Below the pieces are notes generated by a model. It made no database searches and was not told where the DNA came from. It was given only the letters and a program-made list of their open reading frames with translations. Of a stretch of DNA of 64,000 bases, positions 2,150-53,348 are shown in pieces. The stretch covers positions 69,190-133,189 of the forward strand of contig JALMLS010000340.1 in the NCBI GenBank assembly GCA_038496445.1. The letters are read 5' to 3'. Source of the DNA: Trichosphaerium sp. ATCC 40318 (taxonomy: Eukaryota; Protista; Tubulinea). Every line of letters begins with the position of its first letter. Position 1 is the stretch's first letter. A program made the position numbers and the translations under genes.

Positions 2150-3151
2150 ATGCAGCAAACAACACGTCCTCGCGATAGCCACTTCCTACCATACCCTGTA
2201 GCCAATCAATATACCTACACGGTACCAACAAGACAATACGAACTAAAAAGGCTGAAGAAGGCACTAAAGGAAGTACAGGCGCTACAACATAGGTTTTTCG
2301 ACTTGCCTTTTGAAATAATTTGTGTTATTTTGGCATATCTGAACGTAGATGGGGACAGGTGTAACGCTTCTCGATCGTGTTCAATTTTCGCACGTGCTAT
2401 CCGCGAAGTTGTTGGTGTTTCAAATGTTTTTGTTGGGAAGGAAACACTGGTAGCTAATTTGCCTAATTACAAAGGTATTCTAACACGTGCGCGTGTCAAA
2501 GCAACTTACATGAAGAACGGTTATTTCTTCAAAGGTGTTAAAAACATTGATCTTCAAGGATGTAAGCACGTGACGGATGAAGACGTAAAATGGCTTGGAG
2601 GTGTTCATACAATAAATCTTTCTCGGTGTTACAACGTAACTGACGAAAGTATAAAAAGACTGGGAGGTGTTCACACTATCGATCTACGAGGTACAAAGGT
2701 AACGGATATTGGACTCAAGGCTCTTGCTGGTGTACACACGATACAACTTGGTAGAACTAACATTACGGATGATGGCATAACAGCTTTGGCAGGTGTTCAC
2801 ACTATTGCCTTGACGTGGTGCCGAAAGATTACGGACGCAGGCGTTAAGGCGTTGGCCGGGGTACATACGATCAATTTGAGCAATAATATCATCGCTGATT
2901 CTGGCATTAAAGCGCTCTCTGGAGTGCACAAAATAAATCTTTTTTCTTGCCAAAATATTAGCGACGAAGGTGTCAAAGCGTTGGCGGGTGTACATACTAT
3001 CACGCTTGCTTGGTGCAGAAACATTAGTGATGTTGGCGTTAGGGCTCTTGCTGGGGTTCATACAATAGACCTTCGAGGTACATCTGTAACGCCACATGGC
3101 ATGTCGGCCCTAGAAGGTGCTCACACCATATACAGACCTTTGAATGATTGA
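2150..3151 (+). CDS. Intronless F-box + leucine-rich repeat protein
   Basis: 333-aa ORF with F-box-like FFDLPFEIICVILAYL and about 9 repeats of GVHTI(N/D)LxxCxxITDxGVKAL. Confidence 0.9.
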   Translation: MQQTTRPRDSHFLPYPVANQYTYTVPTRQYELKRLKKALKEVQALQHRFFDLPFEIICVILAYLNVDGDRCNASRSCSIFARAIREVVGVSNVFVGKETLVANLPNYKGILTRARVKATYMKNGYFFKGVKNIDLQGCKHVTDEDVKWLGGVHTINLSRCYNVTDESIKRLGGVHTIDLRGTKVTDIGLKALAGVHTIQLGRTNITDDGITALAGVHTIALTWCRKITDAGVKALAGVHTINLSNNIIADSGIKALSGVHKINLFSCQNISDEGVKALAGVHTITLAWCRNISDVGVRALAGVHTIDLRGTSVTPHGMSALEGAHTIYRPLND

Positions 3152-3374: not shown

Positions 3375-5003
3375 ATGACCGACTACAGCGAGATTTTAGG
3401 CTACATAACAGACGTACTCTTTGTACTATCTATACTGGGTGCTCTCTTTACGATTATCTCATTGTACGATAATCAAATTTCCGTTTTAATTACCACTTAC
3501 AAAGCCTTATTTAGTACCCTCTTCAGTAAGATTCGAACATATCCAATCAAGGCACCTCAAAAACTGAAATTTATAAAAAACTCGTCTTCTGATTGTTTTG
3601 AAAATTAGTTAATTATTTACCTCTGTGTTACCATATTCTTTGGTCAGCTAGTGTTTTTGGGAGGGTGCGGGATAATTATTTTTACTAACTTTTTTTATCA
3701 CGTGCTTATACGTTGAAGATTCTCTTATGGTCTGGGAAGCAAGATGTGTGCGGCGATAGCAGCAACAATACATTTTTTCTTCCTAGCGTACGTCTGTTCA
3801 ATTTTATTTAGTAGTCAAGTCACTATTGCTTACTTTCTTCATGTTTAGTAATTTCTTTTGGTACGTGCACCCTACTTTTATACAATTGTGTGATCAGATT
3901 GGACCCCGTGTTTTTTTACTTAATGGAACTGTTTTATTAGGTGCTTTTGTATTGCCTTCAACTTTTACCAAGTGCGAGAACCATTAACCACAAAAGCTTT
4001 TGAAAAATAACTAACGATTTTGTAGATGATTGTAAAGAGGAACAGCCGTACCAGAGAATTCGAAAAGTGGTAAGTACTTGAATTGAATGTAATCTAGTTG
4101 TAATGACGCCATTTTAGGTACCACATGACAGGATGGGGTTCGGCTATTCATTCCTCATTTTGGTGTTAATTTTTTTAGGCATCCCTTTGCTATTTATAAT
4201 CGGTGTTGGCTTGAGCAGATCTTATGGACAAACGCTGCAAGGAACAGAAGAAGATCCACATAGAGGAGCGTAAGCACAAAGAAACACAGAACTAAAGCGC
4301 CTATACTGAACGATTTATAGATGCTACATCAGGAGTGGATTGGCTGTTTTTCTTTCGTTTTTCCTTCCTGGACTAATAACTATATCTGCAAATGCGGTAC
4401 ATAACTCTTTCTATCTGTTTGCATTTGTTGATGTCCTTCTAAGGTTCTGTTCTTCTTTGTCGCCTCTGAAATTCATGGTACTCTATCAAAGGCTCCTGAA
4501 ACCGAGCAAAGAGAGAAAACAAAGGTACTAACCTTATTTACCTAAAATCACGTGATTCTCTGACAAGTGAACGAAGGAATTCCGTGTACTAGTGAGTATC
4601 TTTGTAACAGTTGGACTTACCTGGGTATTCGGGTTCTTAGCGGCTGTTTTGGCATTTTTACCAAACACAACGATACCTGCAGATATTTTCGAGTTCTTAT
4701 TCGCAGTGACAACTCCTTTACAGGCACGTGTTGTTCGTTTCTATTTTTTTTGGAAGCCACTTTTTGTGCTTTTTGTACTTGTTGGATTTTTTTTGACATT
4801 GTGTTTCTCAGGGTTTCTTTATTTTCGCGGCATACTGCATCAATAGGAAAGTACGCAACCAGTGGATCAAGTTTTTCGGAAAATGTTTCCCATGCTGCAA
4901 GGTCGAAGAAAAATCTACTACCAGCTCTGCTACCTTCTCCACTCGTGGAAATACCACTTCTGAGGGAGGTCAAACATCTAACTACAACTCAGAGAGAGTT
5001 TAA
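3375..5003 (+). CDS. 7-TM GPCR, family-2 (secretin/adhesion-like) TM core without a large ectodomain
   Basis: Spliced motifs CAAIAATIHFFFLANFFWCFCIAFNFY, YHMTGWGIP, GLTWVFGFL, PLQGFFIFAAYCINRKVRNQW; about 11 short introns. Confidence 0.85.
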
Positions 5004-5284
5004 AATTCGTTATAATCGTAGTTTGATGTCTTATAGCTCTAATAAACTACTCTTGTTATTAAAAAAAACCCACAAGTTCCAACTGAACAACCTTTTTCTT
5101 CTGTTGGAAAGGTAATAACTTACAGATAAAAGTATAATCGAGAATCATTCAGCCGGCAGTATTTCTTTGTGTGCACAAGAAGCAATGAAAGTGCATGTCT
5201 GGTCAGTCAGGAGTGGATTGTGGTGATTGTAAAAAATGGCAAAAAGACGCGGTTTCTTCCAATCAGACAAAGAAAAAATGGAGA

Positions 5285-5340
5285 TGTGGTGGTTCTACAG
5301 TTACTTGTAGCTTCCGTTGTTACATCGGAAAACCACCACA
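5285..5340. repeat. T/Y-shaped three-way hairpin
   Basis: TGTGGTGGTT (5285-5294) pairs perfectly with AACCACCACA (5331-5340). Inner hairpins at 5295-5310 and 5312-5330 are separated by a single C. Confidence 0.9.
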
Positions 5341-5829
5341 GTAAATAAGGGTGCTGTTTATTATGCAGCATTACACTGAATGACACAGATTGAGATATAG
5401 CAAAATCAAGAAGATTAAAACAAAAGACTTACAAGTACAATCAAGTTTTTGACTAAAATCAAACGGAATCTCAACCCTTTTTGCTCTTTATTAACACGTG
5501 TTTTTTTAGCTTTATCAAGAGCAAGTACACGATGAGCTGGGTGGAAGTTACATACACATATCTAACTCAAGAATTGGTGAAAAAGCTATGACTGATACAG
5601 TTAAAATGGCAGAAAAAATGTGTTTTCTACATGTAGCTCTGAGAGATGCCCATCCAATTAACTTTACAGATAAATTCTAGAATCTAGAAATTAGAAATAC
5701 TGCTTCTATAAGCCCTATATTGTCCGTGACTTACCTCAGCTGAATAAAATAAAAAAGTATTGATAATTTGTTTATTGATAGTAGTATATACAAGGCGTAT
5801 CATCCAACGATACGAAAGTTCGCATGTGA

Positions 5830-6738
5830 TCATACCTTCGCCAATACAGGCCTGAATTTTTTGAGTGCTGGGTCATCTTTACTGACCAAACCCTTCTTTG
5901 CTTTACGAACTTGTGAAACGACTGTATCAAACTTTTTCATTTCAGGTACTTCAAATATGCCATCTCCATTGACCTTGTTATTTGGCATCTGCTTATAACG
6001 TTGTGATAGTTTTGTTCCTTTAACCCAACCACATGCCCAAAGTGCATTAGATTCAACAAGTGGACGAATAGAACCCTTGGAATTCAAGTAGAATCCACTA
6101 TTAAACCTTTTACATCCTGTTTTGTTGATCACTTTACGAGCACCCTTCAATACCTCAAGTACAGCCGTAAGTGTTGCATTTGCTTTTGGCATTCCTGTCA
6201 TCACGTAAAATGTTCTTTTACTGATTGGTTGATTTCCTAGACCATAGGGTGAGTCATACATCACGATCACAAAAAGTAAACAAAGCAAACAATTACATAC
6301 CTAAACCAGATTTGATTTTTTCTTCAATCCAAGCTGTACGAACTGCTTTTTGAATCTTATCGTATGTTGTCCACCATGTCCCCATTGAGCAAGAGTCGCT
6401 GACATGAGCACAATAACATGTGCCATTTGGATTTGGGCTGATGATTCCGATACATGTTGCCAAACCAGCAACACCACAAGGTTTTGCTATCATAAACTGT
6501 TAGAATACATCACAGGCTTTAGAACATACGCAATGACTTCATGAATGTGCCTCCGACACCTCCTCCAACAGTTGCAGGGGTAATTGTGGGTTTCTTTGTA
6601 CTATATCATGAAGAGTGTCAGTAATCATTGGATTTCACTTGACGATAAATTAACGTACACTGGCGCCTTTGATGGTTTCTTCTTTTGAGTGACACGTTTC
6701 TTTGTTTTGTTGTTGGTTGATGTTTGTTTGTTTGACAT
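5830..6738 (-). CDS. Basic protein of about 250 aa with a CheD/CNF1/NTAN1-like Cys-His deamidase motif (3 introns)
   Basis: Spliced: MSNKQTSTNNKTKKRVTQKKKPSKAPVTKK...PKPCGVAGLATCIGIISPNPNGTCYCAHVSDS...FYVMTG...FRPVLAKV*. All three introns are GT-AG with CTRAC-type branch sites. Confidence 0.65.
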
Positions 6739-7109
6739 TTAGCTTGTTGTTGATTTTGATTTTGATTTTTTTTTCAAATCAGTGAAACAAGAATGACGTG
6801 ACAACCACAATTTTTATTTGGTTTCCTCGATAAACACTTTGCTGCACGAGCACTTCTTTCGCGATACCTAGTATTAGCGAGTGCTAATACTATGTATTGG
6901 AGCTTTATCAACCTATTTAATGGTATGTATAGTTTATAGTCTATACTACCGCTTTTAGGGTTGATCACGGTCATTCTTAAAGCAGAAACGTGACAAGAAG
7001 CCCTCTATCAATAAGTTTTACGTGAAATCTCACGAGAAACATCGTGAAATAAATAACGCGAATCTTGACATCAATAACAGACTAGAAACGTAAACGAGGA
7101 GTTCGCTAC

Positions 7110-7504
7110 ACTAATCAAATTGATATCACTCGAAGCACCCATCCACAATGAACGATACCAGATCTGGCGTCGCAGCAAGTGGTGGTACAAGGATGGCTCC
7201 TTTGGCGGAGCTAGCTTGCCTTCCAAGCGTAGTCTCTTTCTAAGAGCCTTCCTTTTTGCATAGATATTAGGGTTCTTCTTGTTCATCGCGGGAGCTGCAG
7301 TCTCTAGGGATTCTAAGAAGACCGCCAGCTGGCATACTAGCACATCTCTGACACGCTCTTAATTTGGTCATCAAATGCTATTAAACCCTGCCCAAGTGCC
7401 TGGAGTAAGTGGTAGAGAAGACTGAATATCAGCTTCAGAGCGAAGAGAAAGAGATTGACAGATTGCTGTAAGGAGAGTACTGGAACTATACCAAACATAT
7501 ACAT
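7110..7504 (-). pseudogene. Frameshifted copy of the orphan ORF at 52634-53026
   Basis: Collinear with 52634-53026. A 2-nt insertion (TCA GA GAT GTG vs TCA GGT GTG) near 7348 splits the ORF, and there is also a 21-nt deletion. Confidence 0.75.
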
Positions 7505-7813
7505 TATACGAATTAGATTTCCGAGTCCAACAAACCGGTAAGTTATAATAAACCGAAATATCGGGAAATTAGAATAGGCCGAAAACACTTTTTTGCCCGT
7601 TGAGTAGATCATTACAGGCTACATTTTGCGTTGTCTAGGCACGTAATAACAAGACACAGATATTGCTCTTACAACAGGGTAAATTAAAACTGGCCGTAGC
7701 CAGCCTGGGGAAAATACAATAGACCGAATAGTTCCGCCTAAAAACCCGAAAATATACGAAATTTCATGATGAACTCGCACCTCTGAAGTCATACCAAATA
7801 CAATACTACAACA

Positions 7814-16178: not shown

Positions 16179-17318
16179 TTATGACAAGGCACTGCGTGCT
16201 TGTCTAAACTTATCATCGTCATCTATCATGCCATCTAACTTGTTGTCTTGGAATGCTTTGTAAACTTTTGTAAGTTTATTTTTTTCGTCAAGACTTTCGA
16301 ACATAGCTTTAGGCGTCTTGCCATCACCGTCAGCACAATCAATATCAACACCAGCAGCCAAAAGTATTCCCAAAGAGATTTTCATAGGTCTTGAAACTCT
16401 TCTACTTTCCATCGCACGTGCAAGGACAACATGAAGGCAGTTTTTCCCTGTCTTATCAAGTTTATTGACATCCAATCCGAGATTGTGCTTTTTGTTTAGT
16501 ACCATTATATCACGCACTACGTTATGAGTAGATTGCGATTTATACTCACAATAGAACAGCATTGTCATGCCTTCTTTGTCTGTCCCACCGAAGCCAACTC
16601 CTCCCTCTGCAAAGATTTTAAGCAAAGCAGACTTGTCAACTGGTTTTTGCTTCTGTTTTAAAAAAACTTTCAACACGTGTTGTTGTAGGCTTTGTTTGGC
16701 ATGAGAAATATTCTTTACTTCATCTGAGGCACCTTGCAAGGCTTTGTTAAGGGTTTCGACATCGAATTCATCAATCGCTTTGTTCACCGTGGAGACTAGT
16801 TGTTTTGCTTCTTCGAACTGTTTTGTTCGGTCTGTGCTTATACAGTTTCCTTTAAGATACTTAATTGCAGCAGCATTTTCCATAGCAACGGCATGGTCAA
16901 GAGGTGTTTCCAGGTCTTTGTTTGGCTGCGTAAGCAAATGTGGTGCTTCTTCTTTAACCCAGTCAAGAACGTATTGTGTGACCTAACGTGGGTTTTTAAC
17001 GGGCGGTTAACGGAGATAATAGTTTATTTCTCTTACCTCTGGGTACTCTTCGAACTCAACGCATTGAAATACTATTGAGTTGTTTTTAGTTAGTTCAAGC
17101 GCGGTTACGTCCGCTCCCTGCTCTCGTAGTAATTCGATCATAGGCAAGCGATTATACAATATTCCTGCCCATAATAACGGCTCATCACCCCAGTAGCAGT
17201 CTTTGATCTCTGGATGCTCTGTTAAGAAATCTTTGATACTCCGTTCGAAATACGCTGTGTTATCGAGCTTGCCAAGCTCTATTTCCATTTCGTCCGACAG
17301 ATGCACTGGTTTTGCCAT
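16179..17318 (-). CDS. Ankyrin-repeat protein (1 intron)
   Basis: PLLWAGILYNRLPMIELLREQGADV, ETPLDHAVAMEN, GLDVNKLDKTGKNCLHVV, GVDIDCADGDGKTP. Confidence 0.85.
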
Positions 17319-17628: not shown

Positions 17629-19926
17629 TTACAATCCATTGAGTTTAGCGTTGTCCACAGCAATCATTTTTGGAGAGAAGATAGTGACTGTGTCGGGTAA
17701 TTGTAAAAATCTAGGAAGTTTCTGACCAAGCCAAGAATCATGTCTAACACGTGTTTGTCGTAAACTCAACGCATGAAGATTTGTCATTGTCTTAAACACT
17801 TCAAAAGACTTCTCTGTAATATTGTTTCCTTTAAGATCAAGATATCTAACATTCAACCCCATCAAGTAATCAGCTACTATTGAATCTACAAAATATTGGT
17901 AAACGGCACAAAAGGAAAACAAAGTACACTCGATAGAGTGGTGCCACTTGCCTGTTAGGTTACTTTGGCTTAATGTCAGTGCCATTAAGTTTGGTAACGT
18001 AGTAATACTAGATAGAATATGGGGCGTGTCCCTTAGTTTGTATTGTCTAGAGATTGCAACAGTTTGCAACGAAGTGACCCCTTGATTAAGTCAGAAACTG
18101 TTTTCAAACAAGACGTACTTGATAAATGTTCTAGAGAATTTACTTTAGAACATCCAAGAATTAATAGAGACTTGAGTACAGGCAAATTCGCATTAGATAA
18201 AAAATGAGTAAGCAACAACTAATGTAATGTCAGTTAAAGCAAAAGTCAGAGTAAGTACTGATAACTTACAGAGTTACAATAGCTCATGTCTACTGTTTCA
18301 AGGTGTAGTGATTGTGCTGGGTATAATGTTGGATTCACAAGCTTGCTACATTGTTTGGCTGTAAGTGACCTAATACAGTTATGTCCGCGGATATACAATC
18401 CAGCACTGGGTGTACGTTAAGCAAGTGCTCAATGTCGAAAACATGAGGTCGTCAACATTGGTGCCTGATACGTTGAGAGATGTAAGTTGAGGAAAAGGAG
18501 GGATGTATGCCAATTGTTTGTTCTCTTTCACACTAAGAGTTTTCAAGTTTGTGAATCCTCTCAAAGCGGCACTATGACGGATTGATAACTTGGTGTTACT
18601 CAAATCCAACTCAACCAATTGACTACCAAGCTAAGATAGCTGTCAATGATAAGACTAAGGATGTAGTGTACTCTTTCTGAAACAGCTTGGAGTACATCAA
18701 CAACAACAAGCTTACATCCAGCCATATTCAAGTGTGTCAAGTTCTGTAGTGTAGCTGCGTATGTTTTAGATGATTGGCAAGCCGTTCAATCAACTTTACG
18801 TACCTAATGCGTTTGCTTGCCAATTGGCGAGAAGTAGTGCTGAAGGGCAATACCCAAGGTTCAAATGCGTCAATTCTTGGAGCTTTGTTATGTGTTGAAG
18901 AAGTGATCGCTTAGGGTTAACGTCTTGGAGTGAAAGGCGCTTCAGCCGTGTCATTTTGGAGCAAAAATCAGCTATCCAGTCATCAGAACGGAAAAGATTA
19001 TACTCAGAATTCAGGTTGAGAGCGCTAAATACACAATAAATATTTTTATGAGCAGAAAATTGTACGTTAAATTAGATAGTCTAACCAACGACTTTACTTC
19101 TCTAGTTTTCATAGGTGGTGATAAGTGACACAATTCTAATGTTTCAATAGTCATAGATAAACCAGTGAAGAACTCTTCATAAATTATGGATTTTGTAAAT
19201 CCAAGCTATTTGTTTTGTTATTTTTAGGTATATAAAGATATCGAATGATCACGTGCGTACTTTCAGAGTTTTGAGTTTCTTTAGGGAGCTGAATAAATAT
19301 GACGGTTGCTCTCTGTGTATCTTACTACACTATTTATATGTCAACAATTATGAAGGAGAAGAGATAGCAGCAAAGATGAGAGAACGTACAGTTAAGTCCA
19401 AATGTGTCAAATTTGATTGCAAGTGAATAAAATTTAAACCCTTCTCTGTAATACCACAAGACTTTAATATCTATGAAATCTTGGTCAAAAGAGACAGTAC
19501 AGTAGGAGAGCTTCAGTATGTTTTTGTAGGTACCAAAGTGTCAAGATTTGGAAGTGGCAAGTGGAGAATTGTTCGTAGGTTTCTGATACGTTTAGAACAC
19601 TAAAGACCATGTGGTAGTACCTGTCTCGTATTATAGAGTTCCATGGGGTGGTAGAAAAGTCCTGAATATTGTAAGGTCTTTTAGATGCGTTAAAATATGT
19701 ACCAAACGCGTAATATATCGATAACAAGCGTTTTGCGCTTGTTTAGAGCAAATACATATCAAAAGCTGTGAAATTGTCGTAAGATGTGCAAAAATCTCCT
19801 GTATCATATCTCGTGGTAAGTGTAAGAACCCAAAAGCTGTGTTTACAGCATCTACTTTAATTTAGCTAACTATGCAGGCTTCTGATGTGTACCATCGAGC
19901 CTGCGTTTTATTTGAAGGGTTGTCAT
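17629..19926 (-). CDS. F-box + RNI-like leucine-rich repeat protein (multi-exon)
   Basis: N-terminal FLHLPRDMIQEIFAHL followed by many LxxLxLS repeats (LVELDLSNTKL, LTSLNVSGTNV, VRYLDLKGNNIT). Confidence 0.8.
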
Positions 19927-36951: not shown

Positions 36952-37926
36952 TTACTCACATACAATACGAGATGAGAAAAGAAACATATTCCCAACAAGT
37001 TTATTACAGTCACCATCAGTAAAAGTATTATACTTTATATAAGCATTCAATCCAATAATCTTACCCTTACGAGATTCAGGAGACTCTGATGATGATGACG
37101 ATGGCTCACCATCGTTGATAACGACAACAAAAGGGAAATCATTTAGTACTGCTTCTCCACCCTTTTTTTTGACATGAGCAATCTGCTTCGCTTGATCATT
37201 TACTGAACCAAGAGCAAGATAATTGATATTAGTTATCTCTTCCACGCCTTGTAGAATAAAATGATCTGGTTCATCCTTGTTAAACGATTCATACTGACTA
37301 CAATACAACTGTGTCCCTACAGAGTTGTTTTGTTCTTTGTTAGGTATGATAGGCATATAAGACTCTGTCCATTCTCCTTTTGGCGTCTCAACGAAGGAAC
37401 AGCCTGTAAACACTGCCGAGATAACGCCTACGCCCTTATCCACGTTTTTGCGCAGGTAGTCTCCGAGTTCTTTGCCCTCTTGGCGTCCATATCCGAAATC
37501 TGAATCTACGAGAATAGCATCGTACTGGTTGGTTGGCATCCCAACTTCTTCATCTGACGAATTGAAATAGTCGCAATTGATGCCTAGGTCTTGCATTGGT
37601 TTCGTAAGGTTATTTACAGCGCGATTATTAATGTATAAGTACTTTCCGGCCTATTTTAGTTAAACTGACATAAACCTGCCGTAAATCAACTAACGTACAA
37701 TTAAACGCTTACATAGCGTAAAGTATGGTCGTTTAAGCTGTAGTTTTCGTATGCTCTCCTCAGAAAATGCAACTGGGTAATGAAACGCTAATAACTTCTT
37801 CCAGAGGCAACGAGAATGTGTAACAAGATTATTAAATAACCACGACACACGTTGTAATGTATTAACCTCAGAACTATCTGCAGAGTCAATAATACATTGC
37901 CATATCTCTGGTGGTACACTTGTCAT
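36952..37926 (-). CDS. F-box protein with C-terminal alpha/beta (class I glutamine amidotransferase-like) domain
   Basis: MTSVPPEIWQCIIDS..LQRVSWLFNNLV..LWKKL; YDAILV..GKELGDYLRKNVDKGVGVI..HFILQGV. Confidence 0.7.
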
Positions 37927-38201
37927 TGAACGCCGAAAAAAATAAAGGAAACCGTTCAACAAAAAAAAAGACCAGAAAAACACAGATTGACTATTTATCA
38001 CTGGTACTTCACTGAACACATTTCAAGGTCAAGTGTTGCGTGGTCTACAAAAGAGTAGTGTTCCATTATGACTAGTTCTTGAGAAAACACTCGACCTGGT
38101 GCCTGTCACGCAAAGAAGAAGTATGGTAAAAGTTGCAAAAACAAAAACCAAAATAAGTTGAAAGTAAGCTGTGTTGAATAGTAACATTATAAAGCGCTTG
38201 C

Positions 38202-51802: not shown

Positions 51803-52627
51803 GCGCTTTTTATGCCCACAACAGAAGTAGTTTGAATTAGATTGTCTTTGTTTACCTCTCTAAAACTCACCTATAGTGAAGGCGTTTACGGTTAACGTGG
51901 TTCATAGCAGTTTGGATCTTTCAATAGAAAATACCTCAGATTGCAGTCATAGCGCTTTGAAATAACATTACTACGCGCAGAGACTTGTATACGTAGCTTA
52001 AATCGACTGTTATAATTTTTCTTGCTGAAATTCAAATGGCTATGTTTTTGGATTTGTGATTCGGCAATTGCCGTGTCTGTCAGATGATTTGCGACTGTAT
52101 GAGTGATACTATAATTTTAACGGCTACAATTTACTAGAAATCTCGATACGGCCGTATTCGCAGCCATTTCAACAGGTTTTACTGCGACTGTGAACGAAAC
52201 GACACCTGCTAACCTAAAAATGGAAGAAAAAACCAGTTCGTTTCACAAATTCGTATCGTCGTTCTACTTTTCTTTGCAACTCATTTCACCGAATATCCAC
52301 CATAGCTTCTTTTCGTGTTGTAGAACGAAGGCACCAAATGTTTGCTAGCACCGGTGTAACGCGGTGGAGCAACTAAAATTACATTCGATATAAAATCGGA
52401 CGTAGTACTCGTTTAGAAGCACATGTTGCGATCCAAAAAATCGTCAAAACGGTTCTCACACCCTAAAGTAACAACCACAAGGGTTTACAAGCGTTTGTAA
52501 ATGTGCATTATCCATAATTGAGTAATTAAAATGGATATTTCTGTGAAGTGTATCCCACAATTTATTTCGATTGCTTTTTTAAGGGTTTATAAACAAATTT
52601 GGCAACATTTATAGACACAATAAAAAA

Positions 52628-53111
52628 CGTATTATGTATATGTTTGGTATAGTTCCAGTACTCTCCTTAGAGCAATCTTTCAATCTCTTCCTCTTCAGTG
52701 TACAACTGATATTAAGTCTTGTCTACCGCTTACTCCAGGCAATTGATGAGGGTTTAATGTCATTTGATGACTTAATGAAGAGAGCGTCAGGTGTGCTTCT
52801 AAGCCAGCTGATAGTCTTCTTAGAATCTTTGGAGACTGCAGCGCCCGCGACTCACAAGAAAAACCCCAATATATACGCAAAAAGGAAGGCTCTTAGAAAG
52901 AGACTACGCTTGGAAGGCAAGCTAGCTCCGCCAAAGAAACCGTCCTTGTACCAAGTCAGACGTCGTAGCAAGCACCACACGCTGCGCCGCCAGATCTGGT
53001 ATCGTTCATTGTGGATGATTGAGTGATCATTCGATTAGTGTAGCGTACTAGTCCGAGTGGAAGAAACGGTAAAACCGCGTCTTTTTGCCATTTTTTGCAA
53101 TCACCACAATC
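52628..53111 (+). repeat. Dispersed repeat; inverted paralogue of 7078-7510 plus 5217-5268
   Basis: Direct nucleotide match by eye, e.g. AAACCGCGTCTTTTTGCCATTTTTT(G/A)CAATCACCACAATC. Confidence 0.9.
52634..53026 (+). CDS. Orphan 130-aa protein (hydrophobic N-half, basic C-half), intronless
   Basis: Intact ORF. Compared with its paralogue at 7110-7504, changes in the FLESLETAAPA..KKNPNIYAKRK..PSLY segment are mostly synonymous. Confidence 0.65.
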   Translation: MYMFGIVPVLSLEQSFNLFLFSVQLILSLVYRLLQAIDEGLMSFDDLMKRASGVLLSQLIVFLESLETAAPATHKKNPNIYAKRKALRKRLRLEGKLAPPKKPSLYQVRRRSKHHTLRRQIWYRSLWMIE

Positions 53112-53348
53112 GATCAAGCATACAGCGTCATATCAACCAGTTAGGCCTTTGCATTGTGACTGTTTTTAGTTTTTGAAACCGAGTATGTCTCGATATCACG
53201 TGTTGACCCATACGAGATGAAGAGCAAGATTATGTATCTCAAGTTATTGATGGAGTTATGTGCGGGCGTGGTTCTGCAGGATTGTAAAAACGCCAACAGG
53301 TAAGTCACAACAAGTCATTTTAACGTGAAGTAACGACTAACGCTCAAC

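Follow-up and report, generated by a model that had tools for sequence, protein, structure and literature searches.

A complete intron-bearing orphan gene distinguishes two inverted copies of a small cassette in Trichosphaerium sp. ATCC 40318

A 64,000-nt stretch of the genome of Trichosphaerium sp. ATCC 40318 (assembly GCA_038496445.1, contig JALMLS010000340.1, positions 69,190 to 133,189 of the forward strand), referred to below as the window and numbered from its first nucleotide, was found to contain two diverged copies of a compact cassette lying in inverted orientation about 45 kb apart. Copy B (52625-53111, + strand) is uninterrupted and carries an intact open reading frame (ORF) of 130 amino acids at 52634-53026 (+). 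Copy A, on the - strand, is divided into a 5' part (7078-7513) with the remnant of the small ORF and a 3' part (5216-5268) by 1809 bp that are absent from B (5269-7077). This extra DNA, called here the module, holds one complete gene for a protein of 247 amino acids and is bounded by a direct repeat of 5 bp. The chances were judged about even that the difference between the copies reflects ordinary structural gain or loss between two old, diverged paralogues and not the work of a transposon; loss, or non-copying, of the module in B is favoured with the same evenly balanced confidence.

The geometry given in the original prediction, a continuous cassette at one place and an inverted paralogue split by 1809 bp at the other, proved accurate in both blastn and global alignment. 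In the blastn comparison of positions 5000-7800 with the window, 7100-7510 paired with 53049-52628 (80.6% identity over 432 columns, E 4e-116) and 5216-5255 paired with 53111-53072 (39 of 40 nt identical). When the A flanks were joined and aligned globally with B, the homology extended from A 7513/B 52625 to A 5216/B 53111, with sharp ends. It starts about 8 nt ahead of the ATG of the 130-amino-acid ORF in B and stops 85 nt past the stop codon, the cassette being a compact unit of 484 bp in B. Repeats internal to a leucine-rich repeat (LRR) gene aside, A and B were the sole dispersed repeat pair revealed by self-comparison of the whole window. A larger ancient duplication around the two copies was rejected, as tblastx showed no other paralogy there.

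Besides the 1.8 kb, the two copies differ by five small indels of 2, 21, 5-8, 16 and 8 nt. Their alignment is a mosaic in which exact runs of 60 nt (7200-7259 (-)/52877-52936 (+)), 36 nt (7469-7504 (-)/52634-52669 (+)), 30 nt (7140-7169 (-)/52988-53017 (+)) and 25 nt alternate with regions of about 70-80% identity. The exact runs, which take in synonymous sites, suggest gene-conversion patches or a strong local constraint at the nucleotide level in the small ORF. The distal block of 40 nt (5216-5255/53072-53111), at 39/40 identity compared with about 80% for the remaining cassette, was observed to contain two T5-T6 runs on the cassette sense strand and to be conserved in A although 1.8 kb parts it from the small ORF. 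It might represent a shared 3'-end/terminator signal, or a promoter element.

The direct repeat consists of the pentamer CAGAC, present as first reported at 5264-5268 (+) and 7078-7082 (+). Its two copies are located 1814 nt apart and enclose the 1809 extra bp. The corresponding 'empty site' in B (53048-53067, +) contains a single pentamer, GTCCG (CGGAC on the opposite strand), at 53051-53055. The joined flanks of A matched these 20 nt of B at 18 positions. The ungapped junction described earlier holds for those 20 nt, but two blocks directly adjoin it, one of 16 nt confined to A and one of 8 nt confined to B. The right-hand anchor is therefore just an 8-nt island, CAGACTAG in comparison with CGGACTAG. 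The occurrence of a 5-bp repeat at this position was beyond chance (about 1e-3 for a blunt event), and a longer imperfect direct repeat around CAGAC was not significant (P 0.18 relative to random pairs of the same pentamer from the window). The signature of microhomology consisted of CAGAC twice in A, CGGAC once in B and flanks in register. Taken from the sequence alone, a 5-bp repeat that occurs twice in one copy and once in the other fits a target-site duplication equally as well as a microhomology deletion or a template switch and does not discriminate between them. The 16-nt block of A (7086-7101) was also seen to resemble an inverted copy of AGAAACGGTAAA from B (53062-53073), with 11 of 12 positions matching and one gap. 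An inverted templated patch beside the junction was considered as a footprint of templated repair and was not significant (P 0.06).

The module, read on the - strand, comprises a gene of four exons preceded by about 340 bp and followed by about 560 bp of DNA. The gene (5830-6738, -) has exons at 6738-6659, 6600-6530, 6486-6301 and 6236-5833 and a TGA stop codon at 5832-5830. Its three introns of 58, 43 and 64 nt are all bounded by GT..AG, and the predicted product has a Lys-rich N-terminus followed by a Cys-rich domain. The spliced product of 247 amino acids was 87.4% identical to P0001, a transcript-derived protein of the MMETSP (marine microbial eukaryote) collection and the sole external relative found for the window genes. 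The alignment was colinear and gapless, which confirms every splice junction and the earlier statement that the module contains one complete intron-containing gene. This comparison shows that the gene is real and that it has a close, transcribed relative. The divergence from P0001 was uneven, with 92-96% identity in exons 1-3 and 82% in exon 4. Selection on the C-terminal half, either relaxed or positive, could account for it, as could a mosaic paralogue.

No known family was recognised for the 247-amino-acid protein in Pfam, PDB or NCBIfam, and phmmer with P0001 against 1.84 billion representative proteins returned only P0001 itself. The gene is accordingly classed here as a lineage-restricted orphan. 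Its earlier description as deamidase-like found no support in any of these searches. A deamidase/CheD-like enzyme was rejected because no deamidase appeared in Pfam or PDB at E<=10 or in NCBIfam; at this threshold Pfam gave merely a chance wnt match for the protein, and CheD was absent. The AlphaFold2 (AF2) single-sequence model had a predicted local distance difference test (pLDDT) score of 36 and was unusable for fold comparison. The labels 'enzyme' and 'toxin plus partner' fared no better. For a toxin-antitoxin or defence pair, neither the orphan protein nor that of the small ORF matched a known family in Pfam or NCBIfam, and PADLOC yielded only a chance match of 13.5 bits for the cassette and module proteins. 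A match to SNORD79 at 5602-5679 (-) was also judged to be chance (24.6 bits compared with a gathering threshold of 47, E 0.6, no proper C/D boxes).

The small ORF of the cassette is preserved differently in the two copies. In B, the intact product of 130 amino acids is hydrophobic in an N-terminal segment and ends in a basic tail. The broken version in A carries a 2-nt frameshift near 7340 and an in-frame deletion of 21 nt and has lost its stop codon, leaving two remnant pieces on the - strand (7612/7504-7337 and 7343-7071) split by the frameshift. The paralogy claimed for the inverted copy is thus real, but copy A is not intact. The frame is free of stops in both copies. The codon changes between A and B were 9 synonymous and 7 non-synonymous in the C-terminal half, and 2 synonymous and 19 non-synonymous in the N-terminal half. 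The hydrophobic segment of 19 amino acids, located in the N-terminal half, is kept in both copies (Kyte-Doolittle values of 1.76 and 1.93). The ORF looks coding because of the stop-free frame, the synonymous excess in the C-terminal half and the retention of the hydrophobic segment, and we read it as a putative small protein of membrane type that evolves fast and has a basic tail. Searches of Pfam, PDB, NCBIfam and PADLOC gave no match to it, the database proteins of 72-228 amino acids included no homologue, the viral contigs searched contained no counterpart, and a homologue search with a neighbouring ORF of 260 amino acids found nothing.

The states of the two copies are complementary: A has the orphan gene intact and the small ORF broken, and B has the small ORF intact and lacks the module. 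Above all, it is this pattern, with one intact gene in each copy, that favours a loss in B, since a two-gene segment that has been duplicated and then reduced to single copy is expected to end up in this state. The same direction is favoured because no hallmark of any tested transposon class was found and the module is unique in the window, because the module looks like an ordinary gene that has three spliceosomal introns and comes with its own flanks, and because the other indels give the A/B pair a history of such changes. A junction with a 5-bp repeat and nothing more is typical of microhomology joining. The second option of the original prediction, a two-gene cassette with loss of one gene from the second copy by microhomology deletion, fits the data at least as well as the mobile element that it put first, and is helped by the complementary copies.

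Under the favoured scenario, the ancestral unit would have been arranged as in A, with the ORF of the small membrane protein followed by the 247-amino-acid orphan gene and a conserved tail of about 50 nt, all on one strand. This two-gene segment would have been copied about 45 kb away in inverted orientation. Copy B would have come to be without the 1.8-kb gene segment through joining of the two CAGAC pentamers, either while the segment was being copied, through template switching in replication-based repair of the microhomology-mediated break-induced replication/fork stalling and template switching (MMBIR/FoSTeS) type, or later by a microhomology-mediated deletion. The stable hairpin located 16 nt from one of the breakpoints is a plausible point of stalling or breakage. 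The redundancy would then have been resolved reciprocally, B keeping the small ORF and losing the orphan gene, and A keeping the orphan gene while its small ORF decayed. The case resembles small inverted segmental duplications produced by microhomology-mediated end joining (MMEJ) or MMBIR/FoSTeS and followed by reciprocal gene loss in its sharp-ended, diverged inverted copies, the single 5-bp repeat at the internal junction, the further small indels, the hairpin adjacent to a breakpoint and the retention of one intact gene per copy. It differs from them in that the direction and mechanism, together with the role of the hairpin, are what we infer from this one pair, and in that no microhomology was demonstrable where the duplication begins and ends. 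If correct, this would be a tidy and unremarkable return of a two-gene duplication to single copy by complementary loss, and the case would draw attention to two lineage-restricted genes, the orphan of 247 amino acids with one transcribed relative and the small membrane-type ORF.

Several points weigh against this scenario. The direction of the event is not polarised, as there are only two copies with no outgroup or third copy, and the searches outside the window were blank. The 5-bp repeat could equally be the product of a 5-bp target-site duplication. Either ORF of a duplicated pair may decay, and the complementary pattern could have arisen by coincidence. The 1809 bp correspond neatly to a single complete gene with its flanks. 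Finally, two of the about six non-homopolymeric hairpins with 10-bp stems fall in the module, one of them 16 nt from its end, which a mobile unit would predict more naturally.

The best surviving of the other explanations, though an unlikely one, is a non-transposon insertion into A, in which a staggered break in the decaying copy was repaired with a 1.8-kb gene-bearing piece from elsewhere and the fill-in of 5-nt overhangs gave the CAGAC duplication. Copy A is degenerate, with its frameshift, lost stop codon and indels, so that an insertion would have been tolerated, and the sharp-ended cassette of 484 bp is compact in B. The 16-nt A-only block, 8 nt from the junction, is weakly similar to neighbouring sequence in inverted form (P 0.06), but this signal is not significant. 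The relative P0001, at 87% identity, could stand for a second locus of the donor type; however, tblastn with P0001 against the window found the module gene alone and no donor copy or fragment. Kilobase-scale insertions of non-transposon DNA are also much rarer than deletions, which counts against this explanation. Filler-DNA and templated insertions are similar to the module in consisting of unique non-transposon DNA with short junction homology, but they usually measure tens to hundreds of bp, and no donor was found here in the window.

A good deal less probable is the explanation placed first in the original prediction, a non-autonomous cargo-carrying eukaryotic mobile element. The element would belong to an undescribed class, carry a complete host-type gene and be moved in trans, its subterminal three-way hairpin being recognised by HUH/Y1-like or similar chemistry, with a 5-bp target-site duplication made on insertion and B representing the empty site. 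The exact 5-bp direct repeat at the boundaries and the content of exactly one gene with flanks would suit such an element, as would the hairpin. This T-shaped, three-way structure (5285-5340), situated 16 nt from the left end of the module as had been noticed, has a perfect outer stem of 10 bp and is real by its folding energy (-16 kcal/mol, z -4.1 as DNA, with none of 200 shuffles as good; z -3.4 as RNA). Perfect 10-bp-stem hairpins numbered 11 in the window compared with 4.7 in shuffles, and the 1.8-kb module holds two of the about six that are non-homopolymeric in the 64 kb, an enrichment that is mild and post hoc. Its location, 16 nt from the breakpoint, makes the three-way hairpin as compatible with a site at which structure provoked stalling or breakage as with a recognition element.

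The opposite end of the module is without significant structure. The nest of short repeated words reported at 7007-7077 is present (CGTGAAAT twice, ATCAATAA twice and TCACGA/TCGTGA), but its fold was no better than shuffles (z -0.9), and the description 'hairpin-ended' is thus right for the left end only. The repeated 8-mers CGTGAAAT and ATCAATAA lie about 270-340 nt upstream of the ATG of the orphan gene, and a near-perfect palindrome (6862-6899, z -3.7) lies about 125-160 nt upstream of it. The palindrome and the 8-mers may be candidate promoter motifs of this gene. For the cassette and the hairpin, identity with a tRNA, a short interspersed nuclear element (SINE) or a known RNA family was rejected, with no tRNA and no Rfam match at the gathering score. 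An ORF for 49 amino acids rich in Cys was also noted on the opposite strand (5195-5344, +), where it spans the left junction and covers the hairpin. An antisense ORF in B (52956-53117, -) has merely a stretch of 13 residues, DCGDCKKWQKDAV, in common with it. The 49-amino-acid ORF, which has no family match, is probably fortuitous.

The termini of the module were checked on both strands in the six registers permitted by the 5-bp repeat, and all the hallmarks whose absence had been claimed were indeed absent. Neither a terminal inverted repeat (TIR), for which the best match did not exceed that of shuffles (P 0.37), nor a terminal direct repeat (P 0.55) was found. The module ends are AAAG..ATAA and not TG..CA, and no A-run was present on the sense strand at either end. 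None of the registers gave TC..CTRR ends, the only one with a 5' TC having TCTTTG at its 3' end, and none gave GT..AG boundaries or a host site with A and T, or T and T, on its two sides. The module was single-copy in the 64 kb. Pfam scanning of 42 window ORFs, nearly all of at least 100 amino acids, detected no transposase, reverse transcriptase (RT), Rep, helicase or integrase domain. The exact-product look-up found no contig encoding P0001 or any of four window ORFs. Viral contigs contained neither P0001 nor the hairpin pattern, and metagenome contigs contained neither P0001 nor a conserved 32-nt word of the cassette. No copy of the gene, cassette or hairpin was thus found in the viral or metagenome collections, and the cargo is a normal intron-bearing gene. 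The mobile headline of the original prediction gained no positive support. What is supported of that interpretation is the 1.8-kb indel, the 5-bp repeat and the two copies of the cassette; the mobile element and the functional labels are unsupported. Should copies exist that share its ends but have other 5-bp flanks, the module would be a new cargo-carrying eukaryotic element with a bearing on the spread of orphan genes.

Comparison with known classes of elements gave a similar picture. Among Helitron-like elements (HLEs), HLE1 has TC..hairpin-CTRR ends and is inserted between A and T, and HLE2 has 12-16-nt TIRs and is inserted between T and T (PMC11417382). Like both, the module has a hairpin in a subterminal position near one end, encloses a host gene and lacks long terminal repeats. 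In contrast to HLE1, it has no 5'-TC with 3'-CTRR in any register and no A-and-T host site, and unlike HLE2/Helentrons it has no 12-16-nt TIRs and no T-and-T host site. Moreover, its flanks carry a 5-bp repeat of a kind that Helitrons do not produce, no RepHel was seen among the ORFs scanned, and its gene is complete with introns and not a captured fragment. The 5-bp boundary repeat is also found in long terminal repeat (LTR) retrotransposons, solo LTRs and Transib-type TIR transposons, but TG..CA ends, LTRs, TIRs and any coding capacity for pol or a transposase are missing from the module. The lack of TIRs likewise separates it from Pack-type derivatives of TIR DNA transposons. It resembles the HUH (Y1) elements of the IS200/IS605 type and their non-autonomous derivatives in having no TIRs and a subterminal imperfect hairpin as a possible recognition structure. 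Those elements are prokaryotic, carry a hairpin at each end and do not duplicate their target, whereas the module folds at one end only and is not accompanied by TnpA/TnpB. It differs from non-LTR retroposons and processed retrocopies in lacking a 3' poly(A) and retaining three introns in its gene, and from spliceosomal intron or introner insertions in lacking GT..AG in every register.

The remaining two explanations are both very improbable. In the first, which is disfavoured, B would have originated as a retrocopy, made from an A transcript that had lost the 1.8 kb by splicing as an intron. The homology does cover the span of a transcript, from about 8 nt before the small-ORF ATG to about 85 nt past the stop codon, but the removed segment lacks GT..AG in six registers and holds a whole gene on the same strand, and no A-run is present at the 3' end of B. 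In the second, scarcely credible either, the 1.8 kb would have been misjoined into copy A during assembly; the DNA on either side of the module aligns in register with one B site and shares a clean 5-bp repeat, and the 20% divergence of the copies makes a repeat collapse unlikely.

The window as a whole is eukaryotic DNA with a G+C content of about 38%, in which the genes have short introns of the GTAYGT..AG type. No tRNA gene was found in it, and no Rfam family scored at the gathering threshold. The only recognisable domains among the scanned ORFs were F-box, LRR and ankyrin, the rest having no Pfam match. The ORFs of this set are located at 16179-16937 (-), 17629-18069 (-), 37690-38019 (-) and 2150-3151 (+), the last of which encodes an F-box/LRR_6 protein and contains periodic internal repeats at 2534-3130.

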